DNA of 15,853 nt from Octopus sinensis (GCF_006345805.1 NW_021825400.1:1-15853); one strand, 5' to 3'; counted from the first letter of the stretch, positions 1 through 15,853 are shown. Program-made: numbers and translations. Notes: generated by a model from the sequence alone, not told the origin.

Positions 1-54
1 TGCTCCAGCATGGCCGCAGTCAAATGACTGAAACAAGTAAAAGAGAGTAAAAAG
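1..54 (+). mobile_element. 3' end of a tRNA-derived SINE (octopod-type, recognised)
   Basis: tgctccagcatggccgcagtcaaatgactgaaacaagtaaaagag is the terminal segment of the family seen at 15437-15853, followed by GA/TA simple repeats. Family identity is from recall, not a search. Confidence 0.7.
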
Positions 55-66
55 TGAGAGAGATAC

Positions 67-99
<33 letters not shown>

Positions 100-503
100 A
101 TATATTATATATATAATTACCTGGTTGGTTTTAAAATGTGTGTTAGCTACCTTCAATATTTTATAATCTTCACATTGCCATTTTTTGAAATCAGTCCCTA
201 ATTCCTATGGCATTCTCAATGATACTGAGAGGCGTTAGTTAGCCTCCACCAGCCGTAATGGAGTGAGCATTGCTGATGAGTATTAACTTCCTATAAGAGT
301 TTACCATGCTAATCTAATCCATCTGGCTTACCGTGGGGAATGTTCTCCCCACTGTCAATGCAAACAGACCATATCTTCTTTTGTGGCTCAGGAGTCTATG
401 ACTAATATTTCTAATAATGCTGGTGCTCACTGCACTCTTTTCACACTTAGTGACTGTGAATTATTTCCTTGTTGGTTTCAAATTGCCGATAGCCACCACA
501 ATT

Positions 504-682
504 TATATATATACACATCCATATATGTGTGTGTATATATATGTGTGTATATATATATGTGTGATGTATATGTATGTATATATATATACATATATATACA
601 GCAATTTAATAAATAAAACATATGCATACATACATACATATATGTACATACCTACATCTATACGTATATATACATACATATA
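504..682. repeat. Compound (TA)/(TG)/(TACA) microsatellite
   Basis: Directly visible; source of several spurious Y/I/V/C/M-rich ORFs. Confidence 0.95.
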
Positions 683-840
683 TGAGTACAGGACACCAGA
701 AAAAAGCGTAGAACACAACGAGAAACGAAGACAAAAAATCAAACAAGGAAACAGACTTTTTTTCCAACAACGAAAAACAGGACAAACAATACAAGGAAAA
801 TTCCCTTCTTCACTGGCCCTGTTTCGACTCAATGCGTATT
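683..840 (+). repeat. Unclassified A-rich interspersed-repeat-like segment
   Basis: gagtacaggacacc...gagaaacgaa...caaggaaaattccc.ttcttca resembles an octopod repeat from recall only; embedded between TA/CA microsatellites. Confidence 0.3.
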
Positions 841-842
841 TT

Positions 843-879
<37 letters not shown>

Positions 880-882
<3 letters not shown>

Positions 883-1017
883 ATAATGAAGGGTGAAATT
901 AATTAATTTGGAAAAATTAGTAATTACTTAAATTTTCCTCGAATGAGGCTTTTATATGCCGAAGACTACTTGTTGTAATTGTATTTTTCCAAATTATTAA
1001 TTTCACCTTCATATTAC
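880..1017. repeat. Imperfect fold-back (MITE remnant-like)
   Basis: 880-927 (gtaataatgaagggtgaaattaattaatttggaaaaattagtaattac) is the imperfect reverse complement of 975-1017 and of about 1567-1613. Confidence 0.65.
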
Positions 1018-2108
1018 GATCCCAATTTTTATCTCAGTCAGTATATACCACAGCATCTTGTTTTGGCTACACGCGGGTGGGAAGGGGCTTTGACACAATC
1101 GTTTCATTCACAAATTGAATTCGGGAACCAGTTGCGGATTCTACTCGCTCTGATACTGAGTGGAGTTGGTGCCTTCTGGTATCTCAAAATTCAATATATA
1201 ATCATTTATGATTATAGTATTCTACGCTGAAGAGAAAAGAAGTTTCGGTAGATAGAATTATTTATTATGGTATATTTATATTTAGTTTTTATGCTTTCCT
1301 TCCTTAAACCTTGATTTCGAAACGTACGTCCGTGGATAACTAAAAAAATGTATGATAGATGCAGTCAATTCATTCTCTCACCCTGTTTTTGTCTGCCTTC
1401 CAAATGCTGTTTTTTTACTGAGATCTCCCTCTTAGTAGAAGAAATAGCTATAACCCTTTGACGCTATTTCTAATTCGTATGTGGTAAGGCACTCGTTGCT
1501 AACCCTTATTGCTTGTATTACTTAATTTTCCTCGAATGAGGCTTTCACATGCCGAGACTACTTGGTGTAATTGATAATTTTTCCAATTAATTAATTTCAC
1601 CCTTCATTATTACGGATAACATATTTTATCTCAGTAGATGACCACAGCATCTTGTTTTGGCTACACGCGGGTGGGAAGGGGCTGTTGACACAATCGTTTC
1701 ATTCACAAATGAATCGGTGATCAGTTGCGGATTCTAGCTCGCTCTGATACTGAGTGGAATTGGTGCCTTCTGGTATCTCAAAATTCAATATAATCATTTA
1801 TGATTATAGTATTCTACGCTGAAGAGAAAAGAAGTTTCGTAAGATAGAATTATGTATTATTAATATTTAATATTTAGTTCTTATGCTTTCCTTAAAACTT
1901 GATTTCGAAACGTACGTCCGGGATAACTAAAAAAATGTATGATAGATTGCAGTCAATTCATTCTCTCTTACCTGTTTGTGTCTGCCTTCCAAATGCTGTT
2001 TTTACTGAGATCTCCCTTTTAGTAGAAGAAATAGCTATAACCCTTTGACTGCTATTTCTAAATTCGATATGTGGTAAGGCAACTCGTTGCTAAACCCTTA
2101 TTGCTTAG

Positions 2109-2110
<2 letters not shown>
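923..2110. repeat. Tandem duplication, two copies of about 594 bp (923-1516, 1517-2110)
   Basis: Both copies start attactta.attttcctcgaatgaggcttt and end cccttattgctt(a)gta. Long identical blocks run throughout; differences are mostly 1-2 bp indels. Confidence 0.95.
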
Positions 2111-2140
<30 letters not shown>

Positions 2141-2389
2141 TATATATTATATATATCTATATAATTTATTATATATATTACAGTTCTCTCTGTATCTTTA
2201 TATGGGTTGTGTGTCCTTGTATAATAAACATGGATAAAACACTTAAACATTTCATTGAGTATGAATTAGTATATTCTGGGTCACAAGTACAACACTGTTG
2301 ATTATTGTGACGTATAATACATGCGATAAAATCGAATGTTTGGAACAAAAGCAAATAAATTGAATAAATGTGTTAGAAGCATTGCTTAC

Positions 2390-2441
2390 CCACAGTCTTC
2401 AACTCTAATGTTCCCGTCACGGTTGAAAGGTCATGCTCAAT
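2390..2441 (-). CDS. Exon 6 (probable): continuation of post-LU region
   Basis: Acceptor catccggctttttcag, donor gtaagc, 52 nt. Phase-0 start matches exon 5 and reads IEHDLSTVTGTLELKTV(G). Short, so support is splice signals and phase only. Confidence 0.55.
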
Positions 2442-2541
2442 CTGAAAAAGCCGGATGTGTATATATATATATACATTAAATCAAGAAACAAAGCTTGATT
2501 TAAAAGCGTTGATATGTATTGAAAAATAAAGAAATAATTTA

Positions 2542-2832
2542 TTCTTGAAACGCAGGATAATGCTAATGATAAACGTGAACCGCATGAAATATCCATAATT
2601 GCAGATAAATCTGTCGTCAGCCAGCTATGTGACTACACCTCACACCCTGTGATTACGCTTCAAGTGCTTACCATTAAGCTAACTGCGCGAACGACAAATA
2701 CTTCTGCAAAGTTAGGCTATATACATCTAGCTTTATAAGACGCGTAATCTGGCCGCCGACAGAGTTTTCGGCAACAGGTGAATACGTTATCCTGTTCATG
2801 CTATACTATTAGCATTATCCTGCGTTTGAGAA
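2542..2832. mobile_element. Putative MITE with short terminal inverted repeats
   Basis: Exact 20-bp inverted repeat aaacgcaggataatgctaat (2548-2567) / attagcattatcctgcgttt (2808-2827). Imperfect extension to ttct..agaa, with TA at 2540-2541 and 2833-2834. Confidence 0.55.
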
Positions 2833-2987
2833 TATAATTATATAATATATTAGCTTGACACTCGGTAAAGTGGGGGAAATGAGAGGGTTTTTAATGTTCC
2901 GAGCATATCTCTTTTTCAGAAAGGAAAACGAAAATGTTGAGAAGAAAAATATTACCAAAAGGAAGTGTGTGATTACATATGTTCTTA

Positions 2988-2996
2988 TGTGTGTGT

Positions 2997-3043
<47 letters not shown>

Positions 3044-3066
3044 TGTGTCTGTGTGTGTCTGTGTGT
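2988..3066. repeat. (TG)n microsatellite
   Basis: Directly visible. Confidence 0.97.
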
Positions 3067-3441
3067 AAACACAAGATTAGTGAATATTTGAGTAGGATTT
3101 TATTTACTGTCAGAATCGGAAATTATAAGACGGAATATATAAAGACAAAATAGTGGATAGAACAGTCTTTTTATTGACCAGCAAAAATTCAGTAAGTTAA
3201 AAAAGAAAGTTTTATGTAATAGTTTACTATCAGTAAATGGAGTTGAATGTCTGAATTTCATGAAACCTCACTATTTATTTGACGTTTCACATTTCTTCTA
3301 TAAAATATGCATGTGTGTGTGTGTATGTGTGCGTGAGAGTGTGTATGTGTATGCATGTGTGCGCATGTTCAGTGCATATGTGTGCGCGCACGCGCGTCTG
3401 TGTACGGAGAAGAGAGAGAGAGAGGGCAGATATCTACTCAC

Positions 3442-3524
3442 GGCTCTTGATATGTTCTCAGCAGGGATTTTATATTCGTTGAACTTTTTAAAAATCAAAC
3501 GAAATACGAGGGATTTGGTCCAGC
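3442..3524 (-). CDS. Exon 5: post-LU region, domain unidentified
   Basis: Acceptor ttttctatatcaatccatag, donor gtgagt, 83 nt, phase 1-0. Joins exon 4 in frame (G|GC = Gly) and reads WTKSLVFRLIFKKFNEYKIPAENISRA without stops. Confidence 0.75.
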
Positions 3525-3934
3525 CTATGGATTGATATAGAAAATAATCGCTGCGTTTATAAATGAGACACACGTCATAGATGCACATAAAACCCACATA
3601 CGTAGATAAAAATATACATTCATAATCACATATACACTTAAAATACTATATATATATATATATTATTCTTATTCTACCTATTATATACGTTTTTATTATT
3701 ATTATTATTTGCAATTTACTTAAGCATTGACATTTAATTGTTATTTATTTTTTATATTTCTATTATATGTAATTTTCTAGATGGTGTAATTTAATTGTTC
3801 ATTTTGAATTGATAAAAAGTGTTTTTTTTATTTTTATTTTTTATATATATCTTATATTGTGTGAAATTTGATTTAGTATTTCTAAATTTAATTTTTCCCT
3901 TGTAAGTTTGGATTTTATTCACTCAAATAATAAT

Positions 3935-3937
<3 letters not shown>

Positions 3938-4005
<68 letters not shown>
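3938..4005. repeat. (TA)34 microsatellite
   Basis: Perfect TA run, directly visible. Confidence 0.97.
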
Positions 4006-4008
<3 letters not shown>

Positions 4009-4029
4009 CTTATCATTCCCTTTCTTCCT

Positions 4030-4303
4030 TCCTTCGCTCTCTTCGTGTATCGTTATCAATGCCTGCACATGGATGATTGGTTCCATACATCGTTAGGACC
4101 TTTCTTGACTTCCTGTCCAACTCCTTTAGCTTCTCCTCTGTCCACTTCAGTTTTCCAGCGTCATTCCGAACTACTGCGACTGCGTGCGAGTTTATCGCCG
4201 AAATTATGTTCCAGGCATTCAGCTTTCTAACCAATATTTTGCTCACTCGCCAAAAGTGCTCTCTTTTACTCTTTTCCTTCATGTCGTGGTGTTTGATTCC
4301 ATC
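4030..4303 (-). mobile_element. R4/Dong-like non-LTR retrotransposon fragment (post-RT region)
   Basis: Reads MKEKSKREHFWRVSKILVRKLNAWNIISAINSHAVAVVRNDAGKLKWTEEKLKELDRKSRKVLTMYGTNHPCAGID, matching the R4-clade pattern AINxxAVxVVRYxAGxxxWTxxELxxLDRKTRKxxTxxGxxHP. Confidence 0.85.
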
Positions 4304-4494
4304 TGTGTGTGTGTGTGTTAGAGAGAGAGAGAGGGGGGAGAGGGAGAGAGAGCATTGCAAACAGTATATATATACACACACGTATACACTCATCAAAATA
4401 TTCTCCCGTATATTAATTACTATAAAATGTTCTTATTAACTATCAATTTGTAATAAACTTGTTGGTGTTATATTAGACAATAAATAACACTTAC

Positions 4495-4678
4495 CAATGA
4501 AATCATTCTTGTTACATAAGTGTCCGACGCAACAACCAGTACAAGACGTGCCATTCGTCCGTTTATTGCATGTAAGGGTATTGTTTCTCATAGCTTCAAC
4601 ACATTTTCTGTATGTGCTGCAGGACCTTTCAGTCTTCAGTTTAGCACCGTTCATTGATATTGCGAATCGGCATACAGG
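4495..4678 (-). CDS. Exon 4: C-terminal part of three-finger/LU domain
   Basis: Acceptor ctattattacag, donor gtaagt, 184 nt, phase 0-1. Reads PVCRFAISMNGAKLKTERSCSTYRKCVEAMRNNTLTCNKRTNGTSCTGCCVGHLCNKNDFI(G), ending in CCxxxxCN, the LU hallmark. Confidence 0.92.
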
Positions 4679-5029
4679 CTGTAATAATAGATATGAAAAT
4701 TATACACTACAACAACAATATTTATTAGGACGATTACTGCTAATACAGCACAACAACAGAAACAAACAACACCACTGGGGATGTTTACCATGCAAGTAAG
4801 TTTAATCATTGCTTTAAAATACCCAAAAGCAATAAATGAAACCGTAAAAGAGTTTCCGAATTGTTGAAAGTTAACAGCATAAGTAAAATTCCGTAAAAGT
4901 TATTGCTATTTAGTATTCAAAATCATGTTTTAAATGCTTACAGTGTCCAAACCTCTCGGATCACAAGGAGATATGGCCATCGGATCACGGTCTGTATCAA
5001 AACCGCATCGCACTGTCACCCTCGCCCAA

Positions 5030-5230
5030 CTTAAAATAGGTCAAATTACCCAATAAAGATGTATCATTCTCTAAAATTTCTCTTCTTACTGGAGGAATGC
5101 TCAAGAGAATTTTTCATATAAAATTTACGGAAAATCATGGGTACAAAAACTCACCAACAAGAGAAACTAATATGCCTACCCAAAGATGAAAATGAAATAT
5201 AATTGTCAGATTGAACTCCTCAGTCCAAGC
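5030..5230 (+). mobile_element. Possible highly eroded L1/Tx1-like LINE fragment
   Basis: EKLICLPKDE (about 5161-5190) resembles the LxLPKxxGGLG motif; there are interrupting stops. Confidence 0.3.
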
Positions 5231-6229
5231 AAATAAAACAGAAAATACATAAACGAACACAAGAGAAACTTCGTTTTATTTTGCAAGTATATTTTATATG
5301 AAAATACGGTATATTAGTATAAAATTTGGAGAGAAAACAACCAGGTCTTGTTAACTTAATAAGGACATTCTGAAAGCGAAAAATATCAGAATGGAGAAGA
5401 ATATTTAAAGAAAAGAATCCATCACGAAAACGCAATTAATAATCGCAAACACCTAACATAATAAAGCAATGAAAATGTAGACATTGAAGTTAGAAATAAG
5501 ATTTGCATTGCCTTAGTTTGAAATTGAAACTTGTTTCTTCCAATGTTGGAAAAGTTTTAGAAGAAAATTGGATCTCCCAAACTGAGTGAGGATGTCATGA
5601 AAAAATAACCAATGATAGTGTCCGAAGGCTGGCGTCTTCAAAAGAGCCAATGGAGTCTGTGATTGCAAATGAATGAATCATTACATAAGCTAACTCAGCT
5701 TCAAGAAAAGGAAGGTCTGAGATCAGAACAGACAATGAAACAGGCAACAGAATGCAGCCATGCCTTATGTCACGCTCTATTCTCCTATATTCTCGTAATG
5801 TGAAGCATTGATCTGTGTCATTACCGGTGTCTTTTATTGTTTCTCTTGTGTTCTTTCACCAATGTACAACTGTGTATTCAGAGATATGCCTGACAATTTT
5901 AATTTGTGTTTTAGCTGCGTTTTAAGTTATAGGTTTTAACTTTCTGTGAAATAATATGACCCCCACCTATTATGTTCTGGAGAGCTTATTGTACTACTTG
6001 ATGTGAGGGAAGATTTAATCTGTTTCGAATAGTTCATAAACCCCGTATATCAAACAACCTCTTTTGCTATGGCCAGCAGATGAAGAAAAGTGTCATTTGC
6101 TTCTTAACTTATTCAATCCGCTCCCTGTAATGTTTGCGAACTGGTGGCCTGTTCGACTTCCAGTTTTACCCCTCTAAGTTTAGTGACCCGAGGTCATTCG
6201 ACAAGGAACCTTGATTCCAAGTTGACTTC

Positions 6230-6420
6230 TGGCCACATACATTCATACATCCTACTCTAAGGACAGCCATGTTTGTCGGAGAAAGGTCACTCTAAGTTCG
6301 TGTGTTCGTTTTTGAATAGTATTCCTGGACAGGGTAGAACGTTGCGTCCTTGAACAAGGCACTTCATTTCACTTTGTCCCAGTCTAATCAAGTGAAATGT
6401 GTCCCAACCTAGTGATGTTC
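6230..6420 (+). mobile_element. Possible third SINE family fragment
   Basis: gtccttgaacaaggcacttcatttcac (about 6345-6371) resembles a conserved SINE central-domain motif; boundaries are approximate. Confidence 0.4.
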
Positions 6421-6623
6421 ATCTATTTCTCTCTTCAATCGTCACATCCTTCTCGTCCCATTGAGTCATGAATAAGAAGATCGACAGGGTGTGTGTATGT
6501 CTACGCAGGCGCATAAAAAAAAACTAGCGAAAGCATAGTACAATCTATGTGGACTTAATGGCTTTCGAGTGACGGTTGTGGATATATTTTAACGAAAAGG
6601 AAGAAAGTAATATTCCAGTTTAC

Positions 6624-6715
6624 CTCTGTTCCTGGACAGCTTGTCACTTCCGATTTATTGCATTTAATTCCTGAACATGTTTGACACTGTAAATTCCGTT
6701 GAAATAACGAGTAAT
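6624..6715 (-). CDS. Exon 3: N-terminal part of three-finger/LU domain
   Basis: Acceptor ttgtattctgtag, donor gtaaac, 92 nt, phase 1-0. Reads YSLFQRNLQCQTCSGIKCNKSEVTSCPGTE; LQCQTC matches the LxCxxC start of LU domains. Confidence 0.88.
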
Positions 6716-7215
6716 CTACAGAATACAAGTAAATATCTGTATTTATGAACCAAATAATGCAATGCATAGCAATAACAAGAAATATTTTCTTTCAGATGTA
6801 AAAACAAATGTATGGCGTGTTAGTATTGAATCAATACATGTTAGACATATAAAGCAAATTATTAACAAAGACTATAAACCTATTTTCATGTTCATTCGGA
6901 AACGTTTCAATAATGTCACACAAATTCAACTGAGAGAAGCATGAAAGCCACTTTGTTGTCCTTTTAGTATTCTGATGTAACAAACACCGTGAAAATCGTT
7001 GAACAAGTCAAAAAAGGGATTAAATTTGTAAGTTGCAACCATTGATCAGTGGAAACTCCCTAATGAAACCTGAGAATCTCATTTTAAGTTATATGTTACA
7101 ATGTCCATATAGTAGTGAGGAAGACGGCCCAATTATGTGAATGAGCAAAACAATATTTGGATAAACAATAAAATTATGATCACTAATATTGTGCTTTTTC
7201 CAATATACACACATT

Positions 7216-7299
7216 TATGTATGTATGTATGTATGTATGTATGTATGTATGTTGTGTATAGTATGTATGTAAGTTTATGTATATGTGTATGTATGTATG

Positions 7300-7328
<29 letters not shown>
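7216..7328. repeat. (TATG)n microsatellite
   Basis: Directly visible, with one degenerate interruption. Confidence 0.97.
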
Positions 7329-7329
<1 letters not shown>

Positions 7330-7330
<1 letters not shown>

Positions 7331-8655
7331 GGTTTTAGTTGCCAATCCTGTAAATACATTGTAGATATTTAGCTGGGCTGAAAAGTCACATTCGATCACA
7401 GCACCAGTAACAGTTAGCTTCGTCCAATGGCCATACTCGGTAACAAGGGGCAGCCATAATAATACATGTATGTATTATGTATGTTTTTTTGTCATTATTC
7501 ACTGTTATTTCAAGATTTGTTGGCAATAGAGGAGAAAGTTTCTATCCTCACCTACGGCTCCATTGGAATTTCAACAACATCAATATTGCCATCACCTCGG
7601 AACTTTCTACCAACATATCCATGCATAGTCTTCTGGTTCATAGATACTCATCCGTTCATCTAATGATACGTTGCGGTAGAGTCGTGCGACATCTTTGAGC
7701 ATGTATTCTGTTATCAGATAAGGATGTTGGCTCAAGGAGCTGCCTTCCAAGTCATATGAAATTATGCAAACTTGGTCAAGGGATGCACTTTGACATTTTT
7801 GGTTATAAGTGTTACCGAAAGGATATGATACGACATTCAAAGGCATCGATGTTAAGCCCCTGCCGCCTTGTTTTCGTTTTAAGGAGAGGGGCTCTACTTC
7901 ACCGTTTATGTAGAAATTATGTGTACTTGTCAGTATTTTCCGGGTTTTCACATAAACAGCTCGGATCTCATCAAGTGTCCAATAAAACAGCCCAAATGTC
8001 AGTATGAGTACTTGCACAGCAATTACGTTGTGGGCCAATATTTTATTGAATGCATAGATTTCTGCGTTCGAAATTTTATTTATTCATCTGTAATGTTCTT
8101 TGTTTATACTTAATGACACCTATAAGTTAATGGTACCTGTAAAACCACTTGTTTTTTGTTACAGGTGCTGTTATGAGATATTTTTTCATCCACCCCTAGA
8201 TATCTGTAACATTCCTCTTCAGATATAGGGGAAACTGTCAGGTCATTGATGGTGATGTTGCTAGTCTGGTTTACATTTTTTTTTCACCATGATATTATTC
8301 CTGAACAAACGCCAACCCCACCTTTTTTAGATGTTGACCCAGTCTTTTTCTCATCCATATTCTTGCATTTGTTTCATAATCTCAGAAACAGTGCTGGCTT
8401 TTTTGTAATTTTGGTTCCTTTGAACCAATGAGATATCCTTAACATGAATGACATGAGGTTTACAGAAAGTATAAACAACATCATAACGAGGTTGTCCCCT
8501 TGGAATATACCTTTGCGATATTGTATTCTGTCAGTGATAATAATCACTCTGTGTTTAATTTCATGATGGTGGCCCACAATGGAATCAGGTCAGCTATGGC
8601 TTTGATTATGGCTCACTGGAAATTTAGAAAGCTGAAGGACTTCTAGCATCCATGA
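7330..8655 (-). mobile_element. Degenerate R4/Dong-like LINE fragment including reverse transcriptase
   Basis: Motifs in the expected order on the minus strand: HSWMLEVL (about 8655), IQYRKGIFQGD (about 8500-8530), eroded (Y)MDD as NMDE (about 8355), LKRKQGGRGL (about 7855-7885), KTMHGY (about 7625). Many stops and frameshifts; the lower boundary is approximate. Confidence 0.8.
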
Positions 8656-8777
8656 GTATGTATGTATGTACGTATGTATGTATGTATGTATGTATGTATG
8701 TATGTATGTATGTATGTATGTATGTATGTATGTATGTATGTATGTATGTACGTATATATGTATGTATGTATGTATGT
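8656..8777. repeat. (TATG)n microsatellite
   Basis: Directly visible. Confidence 0.97.
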
Positions 8778-8859
8778 CCGTATGTGAAAATGTGTGAATG
8801 AATGTGTGTGCGTATGTACATACATATACATACTGACTCGTATATTTTCTCGAGTGATG

Positions 8860-9040
8860 TGTTTCATCGGACTCCATTTTAAGTCTGTCATTTGGAACCT
8901 TCGCTGTTTATGCCGGATTCTTCTCCGTTATAAACAATCAAGGCTGGTCTTTGGTTTCAGGATATCTTCCTACTTTCCCCCAACCAATCACAGCAGCCTT
9001 CTGAATGATCATGAGCATTGACTGTCTTCCTGGCTAAACC
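8860..9040 (-). mobile_element. Possible 3' end of an R4-like LINE running into (CATA)n
   Basis: Minus-strand MIIQKAAVIG resembles the C-terminal IQKxxxLG motif of restriction-like-endonuclease LINEs; weak. Confidence 0.35.
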
Positions 9041-9564
9041 ACTCACTTCTCTCTCTCTCCCTCCTCCTCCTCCCTTTTCCTCCCACTACTGCTTGGCTCC
9101 TACTAACAGTTTACCTCCCCTATACGCACATATACCGCACCCTTCTTCTCTCCCTTTCCATTCGTGTTCACTCTTCTTCGAATAAAACCACTTTTGCTCT
9201 TCTCTCCTTCTTTCGTCAGCCATTTTCTGTCTCTCACTTAACCCATGTGTACCAACCCTTTGCTTGTACAGTTTACATTATTTGACCTTCATGAAGTGTG
9301 CCATCTTTTTCAGACATTTAACATTACTGAATGTTTTGCCTGCATTTTGCCCTTTCTTGTCTTGGTATTTGATCTTCTGAAGCAACTTTTCTCTCTTATT
9401 CGATATTTATCCTATAGATTCTACTGCAACTGTCCATGTCACGCCTTGCTGACTTTACAGTGTTCCCAGAGCATTGAACAGCAGTGATGGTGTCTGAATT
9501 GTGATAACCGTCATGAATTATCATGAATACAGGTTTCTCTCTTCCAATATTTAGATGGCTTTCA

Positions 9565-9765
9565 AGGCGGCAAGCTGGCAGAAACGTTAACATACCGGGC
9601 GCAAAGCTTAGCAGTATTTCGTCTGTTTTTTCACGTTCTGAGTTCAAATTCCACCGAGGTCGATTTGCCTTTCATCCTTTTCGGGTAGCAGTTTCGTACT
9701 GGGGTCGATCTAATCGACTGGCCCTCTCCCCCCAAATATCGGGCCTTGTGCCTATAGTAGAAAAG
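9565..9765 (+). mobile_element. tRNA-derived SINE (second family) with 16-bp target-site duplication
   Basis: A-box-like tggcagaaacgtt (9576-9588) and B-box-like gttcaaattcc (9642-9652). Identical direct repeat aatatttagatggctt at 9546-9561 and 9766-9781. Confidence 0.8.
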
Positions 9766-10049
9766 AATATTTAGATGGCTTCCAGTCCGCCATATCAGCT
9801 TTTTTCTCAGCTATAACTTTATATTTATGTTCTCTAACGCCTTTGCTTACCAATACACTACGTTTTCCTTAATATAATGGGACATAAAATCGTTATATTT
9901 AATACCGACACTCTGTATATCCATTCATCTACCATCTTCAACGCTCATTATTCCTGGGAGGGTCATGAGGACATCCGGTGCCTCAGGTACCTCCTGCATA
10001 GGTACTATCAGAGGCAACTGCCAATACCATACTGATTGAATTCTCAAGC

Positions 10050-10490
10050 ATGACCAAATGAGGCTATGGATATTTTCTAGCCATCTCTTTTTTGGTCTAC
10101 CTCTACATTCCCTGCTTTTTTGCATCATTTTAAAGAATCGCTCTGCGATTTTGTCATGTGACATCCTAATCGCATGTCCGCATTACCGGAAATGTAGTGG
10201 CACAAAACGGAAATGTACCGACCTGATCTGAGAGACTCCCTCATCTCCAAGGTACACACTGTGTCGAGTAAAGCTACTCCAGTTTTTTCGGAGAATCCCA
10301 TTTCGCGGCGCTTCTGTTTGAGATCAGACTCTTTCAGTCGTTAGCCAATATTCATGACACAGATGAGAATGGGCGAAACCCAAACTGAAGATAGTGTGTT
10401 TGGCTTTGCTACCAATTTGTCCTCTTCTGGGGATCGAATACTGGAACATTTTATGTATCTCGGGAGGGTCATTAAGCCAATAAAAAACAG
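10050..10490 (-). mobile_element. RTE-like LINE 3' ORF fragment
   Basis: Reads CGHAIRMSHDKIAERFFKMMQKSRECRGRPKKRWLENI, matching the RTE C-terminal pattern W(F/Y)GHxxRM...RxRGRPxxRWxxxI. Degenerate upstream. Confidence 0.75.
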
Positions 10491-10669
10491 ACGTACTGGT
10501 TCTATTTCACTTTATTATTCGTCCTTTGTTAACAATTTGTTACGAATTAACTAAATGAATGTTTGATTACCGTTTGGTTAACCTATCAACCAGTTATGGT
10601 TGTTAGCGACATTTTGTTGTCAATCGTGACCGCTTCGATGACTTGTTTTTGTTCTATACTTATGTAGTT

Positions 10670-10865
10670 ATGAGAGAGAGTGTACGTGAGAGAGAGGGTT
10701 AGAGAGTATGTCTGTGTACATATGTGTGTGTACATGTGAGCGTACATTCATGTGTGCGCTGTTGTGAATGTTTGCGTATGTATGTTTGTGTATGTGTGTG
10801 TGCTCGCGCGCCCGTGTGTGTGTTGTGTGTTGTGTGTGTGTGTGTGTGCTGTTGTGGTTGTGTGA
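10670..10865. repeat. Degenerate (GA)/(TG) simple repeat
   Basis: Directly visible. Confidence 0.9.
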
Positions 10866-11055
10866 TACAGTTGAATCTATAAGTTCGGTAGAGCGAAGAT
10901 GTGAATGTAAAGCGTGCGAATGGTAAAACGTTTATTCCTCATATCTTTATCTATAGTTTTCCTTTCATGAGACATGATATTGCAATCTTCAGAGAATAAC
11001 CCGGATTTTCTTAGTATTAATAATAAATAAAAGAAGAAACGAGAATTTTACTTAC

Positions 11056-11215
11056 TTTGACATTGCGAATAATCCAGTATATATCTATTCGTTTCCCTGA
11101 GCCTTCCTGACACGTGCCAGAGACAGCAACAGTTCTGTTATAGACTTCTTTAATATATTTAACGAAGGCTGGCAAGTGACATCCACACTTCATAAGCTTA
11201 TTGTTGTGGAGGTAA
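11056..11215 (-). CDS. Exon 2: last LRR + LRR C-terminal cap (LRRCT), with an apparent frameshift
   Basis: Acceptor ttattattacag, donor gtaagt. Phase-2 start joins exon 1 (AT|T = Ile) to give LPSIATIYLHNNKLMKCGCHL, the LxxNxLxxCxC cap entry. The exon is 160 nt; 158 or 161 nt would be in frame with exon 3. The shifted frame at its 3' end reads ILDYSQCQ, supplying the fourth cap cysteine and a phase-1 end. Confidence 0.85.
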
Positions 11216-11827
11216 CTGTAATAATAAAGAGAACTCTGAATGCGTTTCAGATCAACAGAGAAATTCCTATGTGATTTGATAAGAAACAAAGATTATAAAA
11301 TTTGAGCAGGTTTATAAACGCTATGGCATTCATTTTTTAAAGTGTTGTTAATGACATCAATATTGCGAAATGGTTTCTAGTAGAAAGTGGAAGCACTAAG
11401 GTTCTTTTTCTCTTTTAGCTTAGATATTGAATAATAAAGTACCTTTAAATAGATTACTAGCCACTTGAAACGATTCTATTTTATTGTAGTTTAGGGACAT
11501 TTAGTGTCGGGAATTTGGTGGTAGGGATCTTACGATACGACGCCGCTCTGTCTGAGAAAACTCGTTTAGACGGGCGGCTTTGGCGCTAAGAAGTTCGTGT
11601 TTATTCTATGTAGCAACTGGTTTTAAAACTAGAGACGTACCAGCGCAGAAACTGAGAGATTACAGTGTTGTACATTTTATAGCTTCAGCGGTACAGACAT
11701 GTATAGTAATACTCCTAATTAAGAAGGGGAAAATTAATATTCAATTTTGATATATCAATTTGAATATTTTCAGTCAATAATAAATCTCTGAACGAGATGT
11801 AAACAGTAACGGCTCGACAACGTAAAG

Positions 11828-12150
11828 TATAATTGCTATCTCAATATGGCTAACCACTAAGGGTGGGTGTTACTATAGCTTTTAACCCCAGGAGATCATC
11901 GTCAACGCACGGTATTCACCGGTTTCCGATCGTAAACCGGTGATTACCGTGCGTTGACAAGAGGCAAATACCTCGAAACTGCGGTCCGTGCGTATCACTT
12001 AGGCTTATGAGAGAGGGATGACCTCCTTTGCAAATACCATAAGGGCACAGATAGTGTGCCTAAAGCCAGCTGGAGACGATGATCTCCTGGGGCTACAAGC
12101 TACAGTAACACCTACCGTTAGTGGTTAGCCATATTGAGATGGCTATTATA
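11828..12150. mobile_element. MITE-like element with about 70-76 bp terminal inverted repeats
   Basis: 11835-11903 (gctatctcaatatggctaaccactaag...ccccaggagatcatcgtc) is the imperfect reverse complement of 12075-12143. The match extends outward to TA-ended tataat motifs; no coding capacity. Confidence 0.8.
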
Positions 12151-12175
12151 CAATATTTTCAGTGTTTTTAAAAAA

Positions 12176-12268
12176 GAGCAACAGCAAGAACAACAGCAAC
12201 AACATCAACAAAAATACAACAAAAACAACAAAAACAACAATAATAATAATAATAATAATAATAATAAT
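12176..12268. repeat. (CAA)n-like tract followed by (TAA)n
   Basis: Directly visible. Confidence 0.95.
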
Positions 12269-12538
12269 TAAACAACCATGACTATTTGAAGTGAGAAATA
12301 GAAGTTTGTTGACAATGAAGAGAGTAGAGGTGATACCAGTAGTAATTGGTACATTTGGAAGTATTAGCACTCAGCTACCAGCATGACTGAAAACAATTGG
12401 TACAAGTGTGAAGGTAGAACACCTAAAAGAAATCAGTATTGCTTGGAACGCAAGAATTCTTCGTAGGGTTCTTGAAGTATAAACAGTAAACAAGTAACAC
12501 TTTCCATCAAACCCAGAAAAGTAAGCTGTGAGTTTTCA
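12269..12538 (+). mobile_element. 3' end of an R4/Dong-like LINE (endonuclease C-terminus, stop and 3' UTR)
   Basis: Reads MKRVEVIPVVIGTFGSISTQLPA*LKTIG...(KSVLLGT)ARILRRVLEV*, stop at 12480-12482, then a short UTR and (TGA)n. The VIPxVIGxxG and LLGTARILR motifs are typical of the clade. Confidence 0.8.
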
Positions 12539-12539
12539 T

Positions 12540-12698
12540 ATGATGATGATGATGATGATGATGATTATTGATGGTGATGATTATGATGATGATGGTGGTG
12601 ATGATGATGATGGTGATGATAATGATGATGATGATGATTATGATGGTGATGATTATGATGATGATGGTGGTGATGATGATGATGATGATGATGATATA

Positions 12699-12731
<33 letters not shown>

Positions 12732-12775
12732 GTGATGAGGAGGAGGAGGAGGGGGAGGGGGAGGAGGAGGAGGAG
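12540..12775. repeat. Compound (TGA)n then (GAG)n trinucleotide repeat
   Basis: Directly visible; source of the poly-M/D/R ORF 12528-12836. Confidence 0.97.
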
Positions 12776-12789
12776 CGGAAGAGTAGGAT

Positions 12790-12975
12790 TATCCAAAGTG
12801 CTTAGGAGAAGAGAAAAGAATACATTCTTTAAATGAGAATGCATGGACAGTTTGAAAGGAATAAACAGGATGTTAAGGATAATACAGCATCGTGGGCATG
12901 GCTTGAGCGAGGTGATTTGAAGCGTACCACTGAAAGCCTGATCATTGTTGCATAAGACCAGGCTCTCGCTGCCTC
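12790..12975 (+). mobile_element. R4/Dong-like LINE internal fragment
   Basis: Reads RMHGQFERNKQDVKDNTASWAWLERGDLKRTTESLIIVA*DQAL, matching HGQF...SWxWLxxGxLKxxTEsxIxAAQDQAL. Confidence 0.8.
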
Positions 12976-13213
12976 ATTGGTCTGTCTCATTCGCTGTGTA
13001 TTGACCAAAACCAAATAATCCATTGATGAGGAGGTCCTCACGTAATCGCTAAAGCCAAAAACCTCTCAGTTCAATTGTCTTATGCCTGAGTAGAAATTAG
13101 AGGGAAAATGAATAAAAGAAGGTTTAACCTTCTCATTTGACCCTTCACATGCAATCATAGACATCTTCATACACATTCAAGCATGAATATGGTAGTAGAA
13201 AGTAAAGTTAGAG

Positions 13214-13249
<36 letters not shown>

Positions 13250-13478
13250 GGGTATGAATGTAAGCCATTCCCACCACTCTGTACTACATACTGCAGTAGA
13301 TTTATTAGAGAGGAGAAATGAGAAAATGATAATTGAAAATAACAGATACCAAATAAAATTAGGTAGGATGTGGTTAGAGAATCTTTAAATGATATTCTAG
13401 ATATAAATTTGAATCTTAAGACAGACATGATATAATAAAATGTATTGGGCAAACAGATTTCTCCTGATAGAGGAGAAA

Positions 13479-13625
13479 GAGATGACATACAATATATAGA
13501 TGATATACACTATATAAATGGTATACTAGATTTAGAGGATATACTAGATATAGATGATATACTGGACAGATGACATACTATGATATATTTAGATCATATG
13601 TTTGAAGAGATGACATACAAGATAT
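13479..13625. repeat. Degenerate minisatellite, core AGATGAYATAC
   Basis: About six variants (agatgacatac, agatgatatac, agaggatatac, agatgatatac, agatgacatac, agatgacatac) at irregular spacing. Confidence 0.6.
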
Positions 13626-14180
13626 GGATAAATCTACTAAGTGTAGCTAACCTGCAATATAGAGATTATCAGCTACAAGATATAAGTGACATACGAGCTA
13701 CTGTTGGCAAACGGTATTGTCATATAAGTGTTGTGGCGAAAGTTGATAGGTATTGCGAAGCTGCGAAATATTGCTGAGTAAAATACCAGTTATATTTGAC
13801 ATGAGAGATTTAGCTGGATAAGCATTCTAAATATAAGTGGAAATTATAGCAGATATATCTAAAATTGTAGGTATTGGAAATATTTTCTCCCTCGGCACTT
13901 CCTTTATTGAATATGATTTTCAGAAGAGAATATTCTGAACCTTTTAGGAATTTTGCTACATCGTAATGCAATTCTGTCATGTTCTGATAAATACAATTTT
14001 GAAATAGATCTGCTTGTATACCTCCCAACCTCTAATACTGCGCGAACGTTGTTAGTTTTACTACTATTTATCTCCCTTAAAATGTTCTCCATTCCAAGCA
14101 GTGTGGTTAAGCTTTAATAGGGATAGGATTGTGTTAAATTTCCCTCTCTTTCTTTACCTCTCCACACACACGTGTATATA

Positions 14181-14231
<51 letters not shown>

Positions 14232-14351
14232 TATATATAACACAGAAGAATGGAGATATCATACATATTGAACCATCCCGTTTCTGTCAGATTGGCAAAT
14301 CACAAAATCTTGCGATTAGTAATACTGCGTATTAATCGACCCACCAGTTTA

Positions 14352-14514
14352 CAGTGTGTTCTGTTTTCATGTTCTGAGTTCAAATTTCGAGGACGATTTC
14401 CTTTCATCTTTTGGGGTCGATGAATTAAGTACTAGCCGAGCACTACGGTGGATGTAATCGACAAGCCCCCAGCCACAAAATTGCAGGCATTGTGCTAATC
14501 GTAGAAAGAATATT
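14352..14514 (+). mobile_element. Older, 5'-eroded copy of the SINE family at 9565-9765
   Basis: Shares gttctgagttcaaatt, ctttcatc.tt, gatgtaatcgac / gatctaatcgac and gtagaaagaatattt with the 9565 copy. Confidence 0.7.
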
Positions 14515-15013
14515 TTAGCCCCTTGATTACCAAATTACCAAATGGCTTCGTGGTAGAAATACAGAGGCAAATACAGCAATCATCAGAAATATTTGAATGG
14601 AATTTTTGTGGATCTTATTCCTTCTGATAACTCCGTTGTCATAAGGATATAATAAGTAATAATAATATATATATGTGTGTGTGTGTGTATGCTTATATAT
14701 GCACATACGCATATACACACAGGAATCTTTATATATGTGTGCATGTAGGTTGGTATGTAGGCCACTCTCTCGACTCCAGTTAATTATGTGTATTTATAAA
14801 CATGGGGTAAACTAGATCAAACCAACCATTTGATATTTGAACATAAACTTTTCGATAATAAAACACAATGCTCGGAAATCATGTTGATCCACTGAAATTT
14901 AAATCAAATCATTGTTGTTTATTACCAACAACATTTAACGAGGAATTGAGAATTTTATGACCTCATTTTATTATTTTTATTTTCTTATAACCAAAAAGAA
15001 CTTGTTTGCTTAC

Positions 15014-15085
15014 ATTGTAGCTATGCTGGGAAGGAATAAGAAAGCGCCATCTTCATATTTTTCTATTGGGTTGCTGTTCAAATAT
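15014..15085 (-). CDS. Exon 1 in window: single 24-aa leucine-rich repeat
   Basis: Acceptor ttgtctctttttcag, donor gtaagc, exactly 72 nt, phase 2-2. Reads YLNSNPIEKYEDGAFLFLPSIAT(I), fitting the typical LRR consensus xLxxNxIxxxxxxAFxxLxxLxxL. 72-nt phase-2 exons are characteristic of animal LRR genes. Confidence 0.87.
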
Positions 15086-15436
15086 CTGAAAAAGAGACAA
15101 ATATTACACACTTTAAAATAAGTAAAAGTAAATAAATATGTTTTTTCCTGTTCAGTACTAAATTGCGTTTCAGTCAACACTAACAGGGTAAATGCTGATA
15201 TTACACACTACAATTGTTTATTTCTCTTTATAGTTCTGTGGGAAGTGTTGTTTGAACAAGAATAGGTTCCTTCAATCTAACTTAATTATCCTAAAAGAAA
15301 ACCTGATAACAAAACAGCAAAAGATGGAAGGGAATAAAATACAAAAATAAAAAAATAACAAGGAGACTTTCTTATGTGCACAATATGGGTTTTAGTCAAC
15401 ATTCTCATCTATGGTAGAAATATCATCCTCCATATA

Positions 15437-15853
15437 GGCAAGGTTCTGTGGCAGGAAAATTACTTCTCACATCCATGGATTCTTTATTCCAACTGTGTGG
15501 CACCTTGGATAAATAACATTAACTATAACCTTGGGTCAACTAATCGTTGTGAGTGAATTTGCAGCAGGAAACTGTGTGGATTCCTTTCGTATGTACATAT
15601 ATATATATACTATACACACACACACACCACACACCACACATATATATATATATATATATTAATATATATATATATATGTGTGTGTGTGTGTTGTATGTAT
15701 GGTGTGTTTGCTTGATAACCAATATTGGTTTGTTTACGTCCCCCGTAACTTAGTGATTCCTCAAAAGGTATCCGACTGATTAAGTGCAGATTTTAAAAAT
15801 TCAGTACTAAGGATGATTTGTTCGAGTACACGCTTGAAGGTAGTACTCCAGCA
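15437..15853 (+). mobile_element. Diverged tRNA-derived SINE with internal (TA)/(CA)/(TG) microsatellite, truncated by window end
   Basis: Recognisable blocks gtgtggcaccttgg, ttgtgagtgaatttg..ggaaactg, gtttacgtccccgtaacttag and ttgaagg..tactccagca. It ends where the copy at position 1 begins. Confidence 0.7.

Follow-up and report, generated by a model that had tools for sequence, protein, structure and literature searches.

The window analyzed here (the whole 15,853-nt stretch Octopus sinensis NW_021825400.1:1-15853) carries on its minus strand six exons, E1-E6, which are very probably consecutive middle exons of one member of an octopod-specific, tandemly expanded family of leucine-rich-repeat (LRR)-type adhesion G protein-coupled receptors (GPCRs). 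The order of modules in this family is signal peptide, LRRNT, LRRs in variable number, LRRCT, LU (a predicted Ly6/uPAR three-finger domain), a SEA-like module, HormR, GAIN/GPS and a secretin-type seven-transmembrane (7TM) domain. The family, its members and its expansion are already known; that an adhesion GPCR can have an LU module in its ectodomain seems to be undescribed.

The exon junctions proposed in an earlier note made from the sequence alone (15014/11215, 11056/6715, 6624/4678 and 4495/3524, with ends at 15085 and 2390) are exact, and all six exons have, as claimed, canonical splice sites with an AG acceptor and a GT donor. E1 (15085-15014, 72 nt, reading (x)YLNSNPIEKYEDGAFLFLPSIAT; acceptor ttttcag, donor gtaagc) is entered in phase 2, leaves 2 nt over at its exit, and encodes one 24-residue LRR unit that in tblastn, used for all exon comparisons given here, is 65-75% identical to P0001, P0003 and P0012. 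E2 (11215-11056, 160 nt, I-YLHNNKLMKCGCHLPAFVKYIKEVYNRTVAVSGTCQEGSGKRIDI // LDYSQCQ) supplies the end of the last LRR and the LRRCT, and is 91% identical to P0001 and P0017 (E 4e-22 for E2), with the matches ending at 11080. E3 (6715-6624, 92 nt, (N)YSLFQRNLQCQTCSGIKCNKSEVTSCPGTE) encodes a linker and the first LU finger (Cys 1-4) and is 65-90% identical to many paralogues, the best at 87-90%; E4 (4678-4495, 184 nt, PVCRFAISMNGAKLKTERSCSTYRKCVEAMRNNTLTCNKRTNGTSCTGCCVGHLCNKNDFI(G)) encodes the remaining LU domain (Cys 5-12, with the CCxxxLCN end) and is 100% identical to P0011 and 98% identical to P0001 (E 1e-34 to 1e-37). E5 (3524-3442, 83 nt, (G)WTKSLVFRLIFKKFNEYKIPAENISRA) is 97% identical to P0011 and starts the SEA-like module, and E6 (2441-2390, 52 nt, IEHDLSTVTGT / (F)RVEDCG) changes frame within the exon. 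Each exon is thus separately matched by predicted Octopus proteins, with identities to family members of 58-100%, and all 19 matches of the spliced peptide in a collection of 5.8 billion proteins are from Octopus. Judged by sequence comparison, the six are genuine exons and not chance open reading frames (ORFs). Their encoded content (LRR, LRRCT, a complete 12-Cys domain and further sequence) is as the earlier note described it, and a reading guided by homology does contain its six sequons (NRT, NYS, NKS, NNT, NGT and NIS); its claim of matching phases does not hold, as E2 carries 2 nt too many and E6 1 nt too few in comparison with paralogues.

The gene extends past both ends of the window, the next exon after E6 lying beyond the window start; a low-stringency tblastn scan of window positions 1-2389 and 15086-15853 found no credible further family exons. 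An optional 51-nt 5' extension of E2 (11216-11266, minus strand), using the upstream acceptor cacatag/G, would add NFSVDLKRIQSSLYYYS in frame. The same 17 residues are present in the O. vulgaris models P0040, P0048, P0050 and P0069, where the insertion breaks into the last LRR. Since E1 is exactly one 72-nt, 24-residue LRR unit, duplication or skipping of such an exon would preserve the frame, and a unit of this size fits the widely differing LRR counts among family models (for example P0063 and P0040). The single repeat of the window is detected by Pfam LRR_8 at E 8e-4, compared with 1e-62 to 1e-97 in paralogues. The LRR-LRRCT part of paralogue P0017 aligns through CGC...C to LRRC4 and TLR3, and its CGC motif to IGFALS. 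The cap motif is KCGCH...C...C; its fourth and final Cys in the window (YSQC) is out of frame owing to the 2 additional nt in E2, and is reached only after a +2 frame shift.

Assignment to the adhesion GPCRs comes from the relatives. When the longer fragment P0018 was used as query, the proteins found included some named adhesion GPCR G6-like, G2-like or A2-like, which carry the Pfam domains ADGRA2/3-GAIN, GPS and 7tm_2. Single chains combining LRR, LU, GPS and 7tm_2 are P0072 (XP_052827273.1, 1010 aa), P0074, P0076 and P0078/P0091 (named ADGRA3); the Pfam matches to GPS and 7tm_2 in P0072, P0074, P0076 and P0078 identify these relatives as adhesion GPCRs. P0076 is one uninterrupted 1155-codon ORF on an intron-less 4201-nt contig (L003, run SRR21372857) that looks like a transcript; LRR, LU, GPS and 7tm_2 are carried on it together, so that ectodomain and 7TM stand on one chain, in this case the chain of a relative only. 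HormR following the SEA-like module is indicated by weak Pfam HRM matches. The solved structures that come closest to the GAIN/7TM part of P0072 are ADGRG2 (E 2e-68) and ADGRG6 (2e-65, residues 427-965), and residues 392-706 of P0072 match the structure of the ADGRG6 extracellular region (6v55). RefSeq names for members of the family include adhesion G-protein coupled receptor G6-like, GPR126-like, ADGRA3, slit homolog 1-like and LRRC15-like. In the searches run the family is confined to octopods, and the protein matches of the window all come from Octopus and Argonauta.

The family of the window is the octopus-specific adhesion-GPCR group 3 expansion that has already been published (PMC6408891). 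In this group LRRs were found in 5 of 22 members, with one member having a Death domain, and expression shows enrichment in axial nerve cord, suckers and skin (Ritschard et al., 2019; PMC6408891). An N-terminal LRR region, GPS, 7tm_2 and an occasional Death domain are common to group 3 and to the relatives of the window; the window copy differs in being partial and frame-broken. A further difference is that LRRCT is separated from HormR by LU and SEA-like modules, of which that paper, reporting only GPS, 7TM, LRR and Death domains, makes no mention ("Ly6" does not occur in it). A C-terminal cytoplasmic Death domain is predicted in P0074 (XP_014788728.1, O. bimaculoides; Pfam E 3e-6), in agreement with the single Death-domain member in PMC6408891.

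The earlier note had expected that unannotated homologues might already be in databases, and predicted relatives are indeed present in protein collections. Its proposal of an orphan or new receptor class fails, however, as LRR-LRRCT-LU is the N-terminal cassette of adhesion GPCRs whose expansion is published (PMC6408891). It is thus highly unlikely that the octopus proteins form a self-contained, unknown LRR-LRRCT-LU class of cell-surface receptor unrelated to known receptor families. The models that hold only LRR-LRRCT-LU and a short tail (P0003, P0060, P0063 and P0064) would fit such a class, as would the finding of no relevant description in a literature search for an LU/Ly6 domain in an adhesion GPCR or for an LRR-LU fusion; but longer models and the transcript-like contig run on into SEA-like, HormR, GAIN/GPS and 7TM modules, and E5 and E6 already encode the next module of the chain. 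Moreover, no transmembrane helix or glycosylphosphatidylinositol (GPI) signal follows the LU domain in the window, where the segment WTKSLVFRLIF instead forms the opening strand of the following module, in which role it is conserved.

Several observations weigh against placing this copy among the adhesion GPCRs. The window has no exon for HormR, GAIN, 7TM or a signal peptide, and most gene models of the family are fragments; we infer the place of this copy in the GPCR-bearing part of the family from its relatives. The locus most similar to the window among those whose DNA was read, O. sinensis CM016887.1 (L001), has a gene of 20.7 kb in which no GAIN or 7TM exon is seen, and its 5' neighbourhood differs from that of the window in having an ankyrin-repeat gene and no equivalents of E1-E3. 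The assignment of the SEA module, which is part of the family order, is weak. The models of the closest relatives (P0001, P0011, P0016, P0019 and P0050) end after the ectodomain modules with ...ESSSTGNGTEDRTAETNF, and this sub-branch may therefore also make secreted ectodomain proteins that lack a 7TM domain, to judge from the predicted proteins. The O. vulgaris model P0069, however, with an LU domain 98% identical to that of the window, continues to a GPS motif and two transmembrane helices, after which the model degenerates.

The similarity between the window and L001 ends abruptly at window 5856 / L001 8804, and in the O. vulgaris model P0062 ankyrin repeats are joined to a SEA-like, a HormR and a second SEA-like module; the ankyrin arrangement of L001 and P0062 represents a paralogue that has been rearranged or truncated, or else a chimeric model. 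The poor annotation of these loci is illustrated by the O. vulgaris "hypothetical predicted protein" P0002, where the exon for LRRCT is translated in an incorrect frame (MSLARVLKAQGNEYLYWIIRNVK), the LU domain is present in two copies, and the model runs past the exon-4 donor into the intron (GKCYLLSNITLTSLLQIDS).

E1-E6 are one gene. The LRR-LRRCT part and the Cys-rich domain are joined in many paralogous models from O. sinensis, O. vulgaris, O. bimaculoides and Argonauta hians, and a second O. sinensis locus (L002) is colinear with the window from 15576 to 3419, in introns as well as exons, at 70-77% identity; the annotated gene of L002, P0004, joins LRR, LRRCT, LU and HormR. The placement of LRR, LRRCT and LU in one chain, the central claim of the earlier note, is therefore upheld by paralogue models, by the intron-less contig L003 and by colinearity with L002. 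Division of the locus into two tandem genes on the same strand, one for LRR/LRRCT (E1-E2) and one for a stand-alone Ly6-like protein (E3-E6), is extremely improbable. It could be suspected from the NCBI model P0011 at the nearest O. sinensis locus, which begins inside exon 4 and has no LRR part, but the start codon of P0011 is owed solely to a 1-nt deletion in L001 exon 4; similarly, the fragment P0014 is named "ly6/PLAUR domain-containing protein 1-like", but itself starts with the LRRCT motif MMCGCH. The frame break in E2 does fall exactly between the two supposed genes. E3, however, has neither a start codon nor a signal peptide and starts in phase 1 as in paralogues, and dozens of models in four species, as well as contig L003, join both parts.

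The 12-Cys domain encoded by E3 and E4 (LQCQTC...CCVGHLCN) is predicted, from sequence profiles and a modeled fold, to be a Ly6/uPAR three-finger domain. It has the LxCxxC start and the CCxxxxCN-type end, that is, the cysteine framework expected of LU domains; 11 of its Cys are invariant and one nearly invariant in 16 paralogues, which vary mostly in the finger loops on a fixed cysteine scaffold. A HMMER scan with the family profile against 1.84 billion representatives found 28 proteins, including distant ones from Argonauta, scallop, whelk and sea cucumber, and the sea-cucumber protein reached by the octopus profile has the Pfam assignments CD59 and Toxin_TOLIP; a homologue search with the LU alignment gave only 6 proteins, all of them already known. 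When the profile A3, which includes distant members, was compared with the PDB, human LYPD1 was matched over its full length at E 3.4e-7, the consensus pairing with 11 of the 12 LYPD1 Cys, followed by LYPD6 (E 0.006), SLURP-1 (0.05), CD59, TGF-beta/activin receptor ectodomains and three-finger toxins; all 27 matches are three-finger proteins. The narrower profile A2 reached E 0.035 only.

Structure prediction points to the same fold. AlphaFold, run on the diverse 22-sequence alignment A3, gave a model with pLDDT 78.8 and pTM 0.70, and the top 50 PDB matches of Foldseek are all three-finger folds, with Lynx2/LYPD1 first (TM 0.61/0.66) and Prod1 also among them. Together with the PDB profile search this bears out the claim of a complete LU-like domain. 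Less favorable to the assignment are the facts that the model represents the LU domain of paralogue P0048 (96% identical to that of the window) and not the peptide of the window itself, that AlphaFold on a shallow alignment of 16 octopus sequences was uninformative (pLDDT 37.7), that Foldseek gave weak E-values (0.026 at best), a common outcome for disulfide-rich domains of ~90 residues, and that Pfam, applied to the spliced peptide and to the LU segment alone, reported a weak LRR_8 match and no LU family. The failure of Pfam on single sequences and Foldseek E-values above 0.01 are also what another small disulfide-rich fold that mimics LU cysteine spacing would give. Such mimicry is nevertheless very improbable in view of the profile match to LYPD1 with its paired Cys, the uniformly three-finger character of the PDB sequence matches and of the top 50 structural matches, and the connection of the same profile to a protein positive for CD59/Toxin_TOLIP.

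The module that follows the LU domain (WTKS...VEDCG..., begun by E5 and E6) is probably SEA-like by sequence: Pfam detects SEA in 2 of 9 diverse members, with a best E of 3.7e-4, and comparison with the PDB gave one weak fragment match to ADGRF1 (E 0.39). The 285-aa scallop protein P0082 (Mizuhopecten yessoensis, OWF51986.1) has, directly after an LU domain that matches the octopus profile at E 2e-5, a module aligning with the SEA-like one (alignment A4); the LU-SEA pair may therefore be older than the cephalopods.

As assembled, the chain has no read-through translation. Translation of E2 in the LRRCT frame gives ...GKRIDIYWIIRNVK, with phase 0 at the exon end, whereas E3 from 6715 requires phase 1; an in-frame reading like that of the paralogues requires an E2 of 158 nt. 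The excess of 2 nt over the paralogue-like ..RIPILDY.. reading lies at 11085-11077 (minus strand) in a TA run, GATATATAC, and only after a 2-nt shift within this run does the window recover the paralogue reading ...GKRIPILDYSQCQ/NYSLFQRNLQCQTC (...NYSLFQ); ILDYSQCQ is thus present in E2, but 2 nt out of frame. An alternative E3 acceptor, tttacag/TGTCAAACATGT (~6687/6686), would keep the ORF open from the shifted E2 (...IRNVK/CQTC...); it was rejected as the regular junction, since ...YSQCQ/NYSLFQRNLQCQTC is the reading in every paralogue and use of this acceptor would cost the LRRCT its fourth Cys. In E6, where 53 nt are needed, the window reads ACA TT- AGA GTT GAA GAC TGT GG against the paralogue TFRVEDCG, a single T of TTT being absent at 2408-2407.

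Comparison with L001 bears on the origin of these breaks. L001 matches window 2117-5856 at ~95% identity, with 63 mismatches and 81 gap openings; the substitution divergence is 1.8% over 3.8 kb, and 67 of the 81 gaps are of 1 nt, mostly in homopolymers and evenly split between the two sequences. No listed protein is identical to the window peptide. E4-E6 show no substitution against L001 where 5.8 are expected from the intron rate (P 0.003), and three frameshifting indels, two of which are defects of L001 and one of the window. The L001 exons (9975-10195 and 12665-12750) have 1-nt deletions in exons 4 and 6 as well as a GTAGC donor, and the annotated protein of this locus, P0011, has its start ATG in frame only through the exon-4 deletion. 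Substitutions have thus been purged from the exons while indels have not, a pattern that looks like indel error in a long-read assembly and is unlike neutral decay; on balance, the frameshifts are somewhat better explained as assembly errors than as real pseudogenisation.

That the copy is instead a decaying duplicate (a pseudogene or gene relic), with real frameshifts and with exons that survive only through recent duplication, is less likely but a serious possibility. Two independent frame breaks occur within 643 nt of exon, no window-derived protein is among the listed hits of the protein collection, the nearly identical L001 likewise has exon indels and a truncated 5' end, and dead copies are to be expected in a large and recent tandem expansion (PMC6408891). 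On the other hand, there are no in-frame stops and no substitutions that disrupt conserved residues, the 12 LU Cys and all splice sites are intact, and the absence of substitutions in E4-E6 is not what decay would produce; exon indels occur near the intron rate, the overall excess of gap openings over mismatches is a signature of sequencing or assembly error, and both breaks of the window fall in simple sequence, one in a run of TA and the other in a run of T. Assembly error is therefore the explanation favored here. More generally, one-base assembly indels generate spurious start codons and apparent pseudogenes, and the loci of this family are badly fragmented and misnamed (slit-like, decorin-like, chaoptin, LRRC15-like and LYPD1-like).

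In ADGRA2 and ADGRA3 (GPR124 and GPR125) the order of domains is LRRs, LRRCT, Ig, HormR, GAIN and 7TM, and the front half of ADGRG6 (GPR126) is CUB-PTX. The octopus family resembles ADGRA2/3 in that these adhesion GPCRs begin with LRRs under an LRRCT cap and have HormR, GAIN and 7TM further along the chain; many octopus members carry the precomputed Pfam domain PF26588 ("ADGRA2/3 GAIN"), and one is named ADGRA3. It differs from ADGRA2/3 in that LU and SEA-like modules replace Ig (P0078 has no Ig match) and in that the 7TM/GAIN part of P0072 scores best against ADGRG2/G6 among solved structures; membership of the ADGRA2/3 subfamily was rejected on these two grounds. With ADGRG6 the family shares a back half of SEA (a weak assignment), HormR, GAIN and 7TM, whereas its front half is LRRNT-LRR-LRRCT-LU instead of CUB-PTX. 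By its predicted domains, then, the family is an ADGRA-type front half, with LU and SEA in place of Ig, on an ADGRG6-type back half.

The LU domain itself resembles LYPD1/Lynx2, LYPD6 and SLURP-1, which give the best sequence and structure matches, in its Cys count, LxCxxC start and CCxxxLCN end; those proteins, however, are single-domain and GPI-anchored or secreted, whereas the octopus LU is internal in a multidomain ectodomain and only ~18-25% identical to them. The TGF-beta/activin receptors, which recur among the matches, are a precedent in that these transmembrane signaling receptors bind ligand through a three-finger domain, but they are single-pass kinases in which LU is the sole extracellular module, with no LRR, GAIN or 7TM. 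In the octopus proteins LU would have been recruited into a multidomain signaling receptor that does not belong to the TGF-beta receptor family. It is the adhesive modules of the ectodomain that define adhesion GPCRs, and an LU/three-finger module was not among the described ones found.

By analogy with other adhesion GPCRs we infer a mechanism for the family in which the LRR arc and the LU fingers would form a composite ligand-binding head, held off the membrane by a stalk of SEA-like, HormR and GAIN modules; engagement of the head, by binding or by force, would be passed to the tethered-agonist switch of GAIN/GPS and to the 7TM domain, and any forms without 7TM might act as soluble binders or decoys. 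A head composed of the LRR arc and the three-finger domain provides concrete fragments that can be expressed in a hunt for ligands, in an expansion tied to suckers, skin and the axial nerve cord. Lynx2/LYPD1, the nearest solved relative of the octopus LU, is a modulator of nicotinic receptors, and octopus has expanded chemotactile receptors of nicotinic ancestry. It is conceivable, as a long shot, that LU is an undescribed ligand-binding module of adhesion GPCRs and that LRR-LU heads, including those of the apparently 7TM-less secreted forms, act by binding or tuning these chemotactile receptors, or Cys-loop channels of other kinds; if true, binding of such channels by the LRR-LU head would couple a Lynx-type modulator to a GPCR.

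The remaining DNA of the window is AT-rich and laden with microsatellites, and scans of the window for Rfam families, tRNA and tandem repeats found microsatellites only. These are (TA)n, (TG)n, (TATG)n and (ATG)n (~66 copies), at 63-115, 2109-2178, 2988-3066, 3938-4005, 7216-7329, 8656-8785 and 12540-12738, and they yield many spurious low-complexity ORFs on both strands. Intron ORFs on the minus strand (at 7607-8577 and 9925-10164) gave no match in Pfam; they contain the motifs QGDNL.., ..GGRGL.. and GRPKKRW.., which we take to be those of retrotransposon reverse transcriptases. A dispersed repeat of ~150-200 bp at 9561-9772 and 14359-14515, with no match to tRNA or Rfam, is also present in several copies in L001 and L002, at 71-83% identity.

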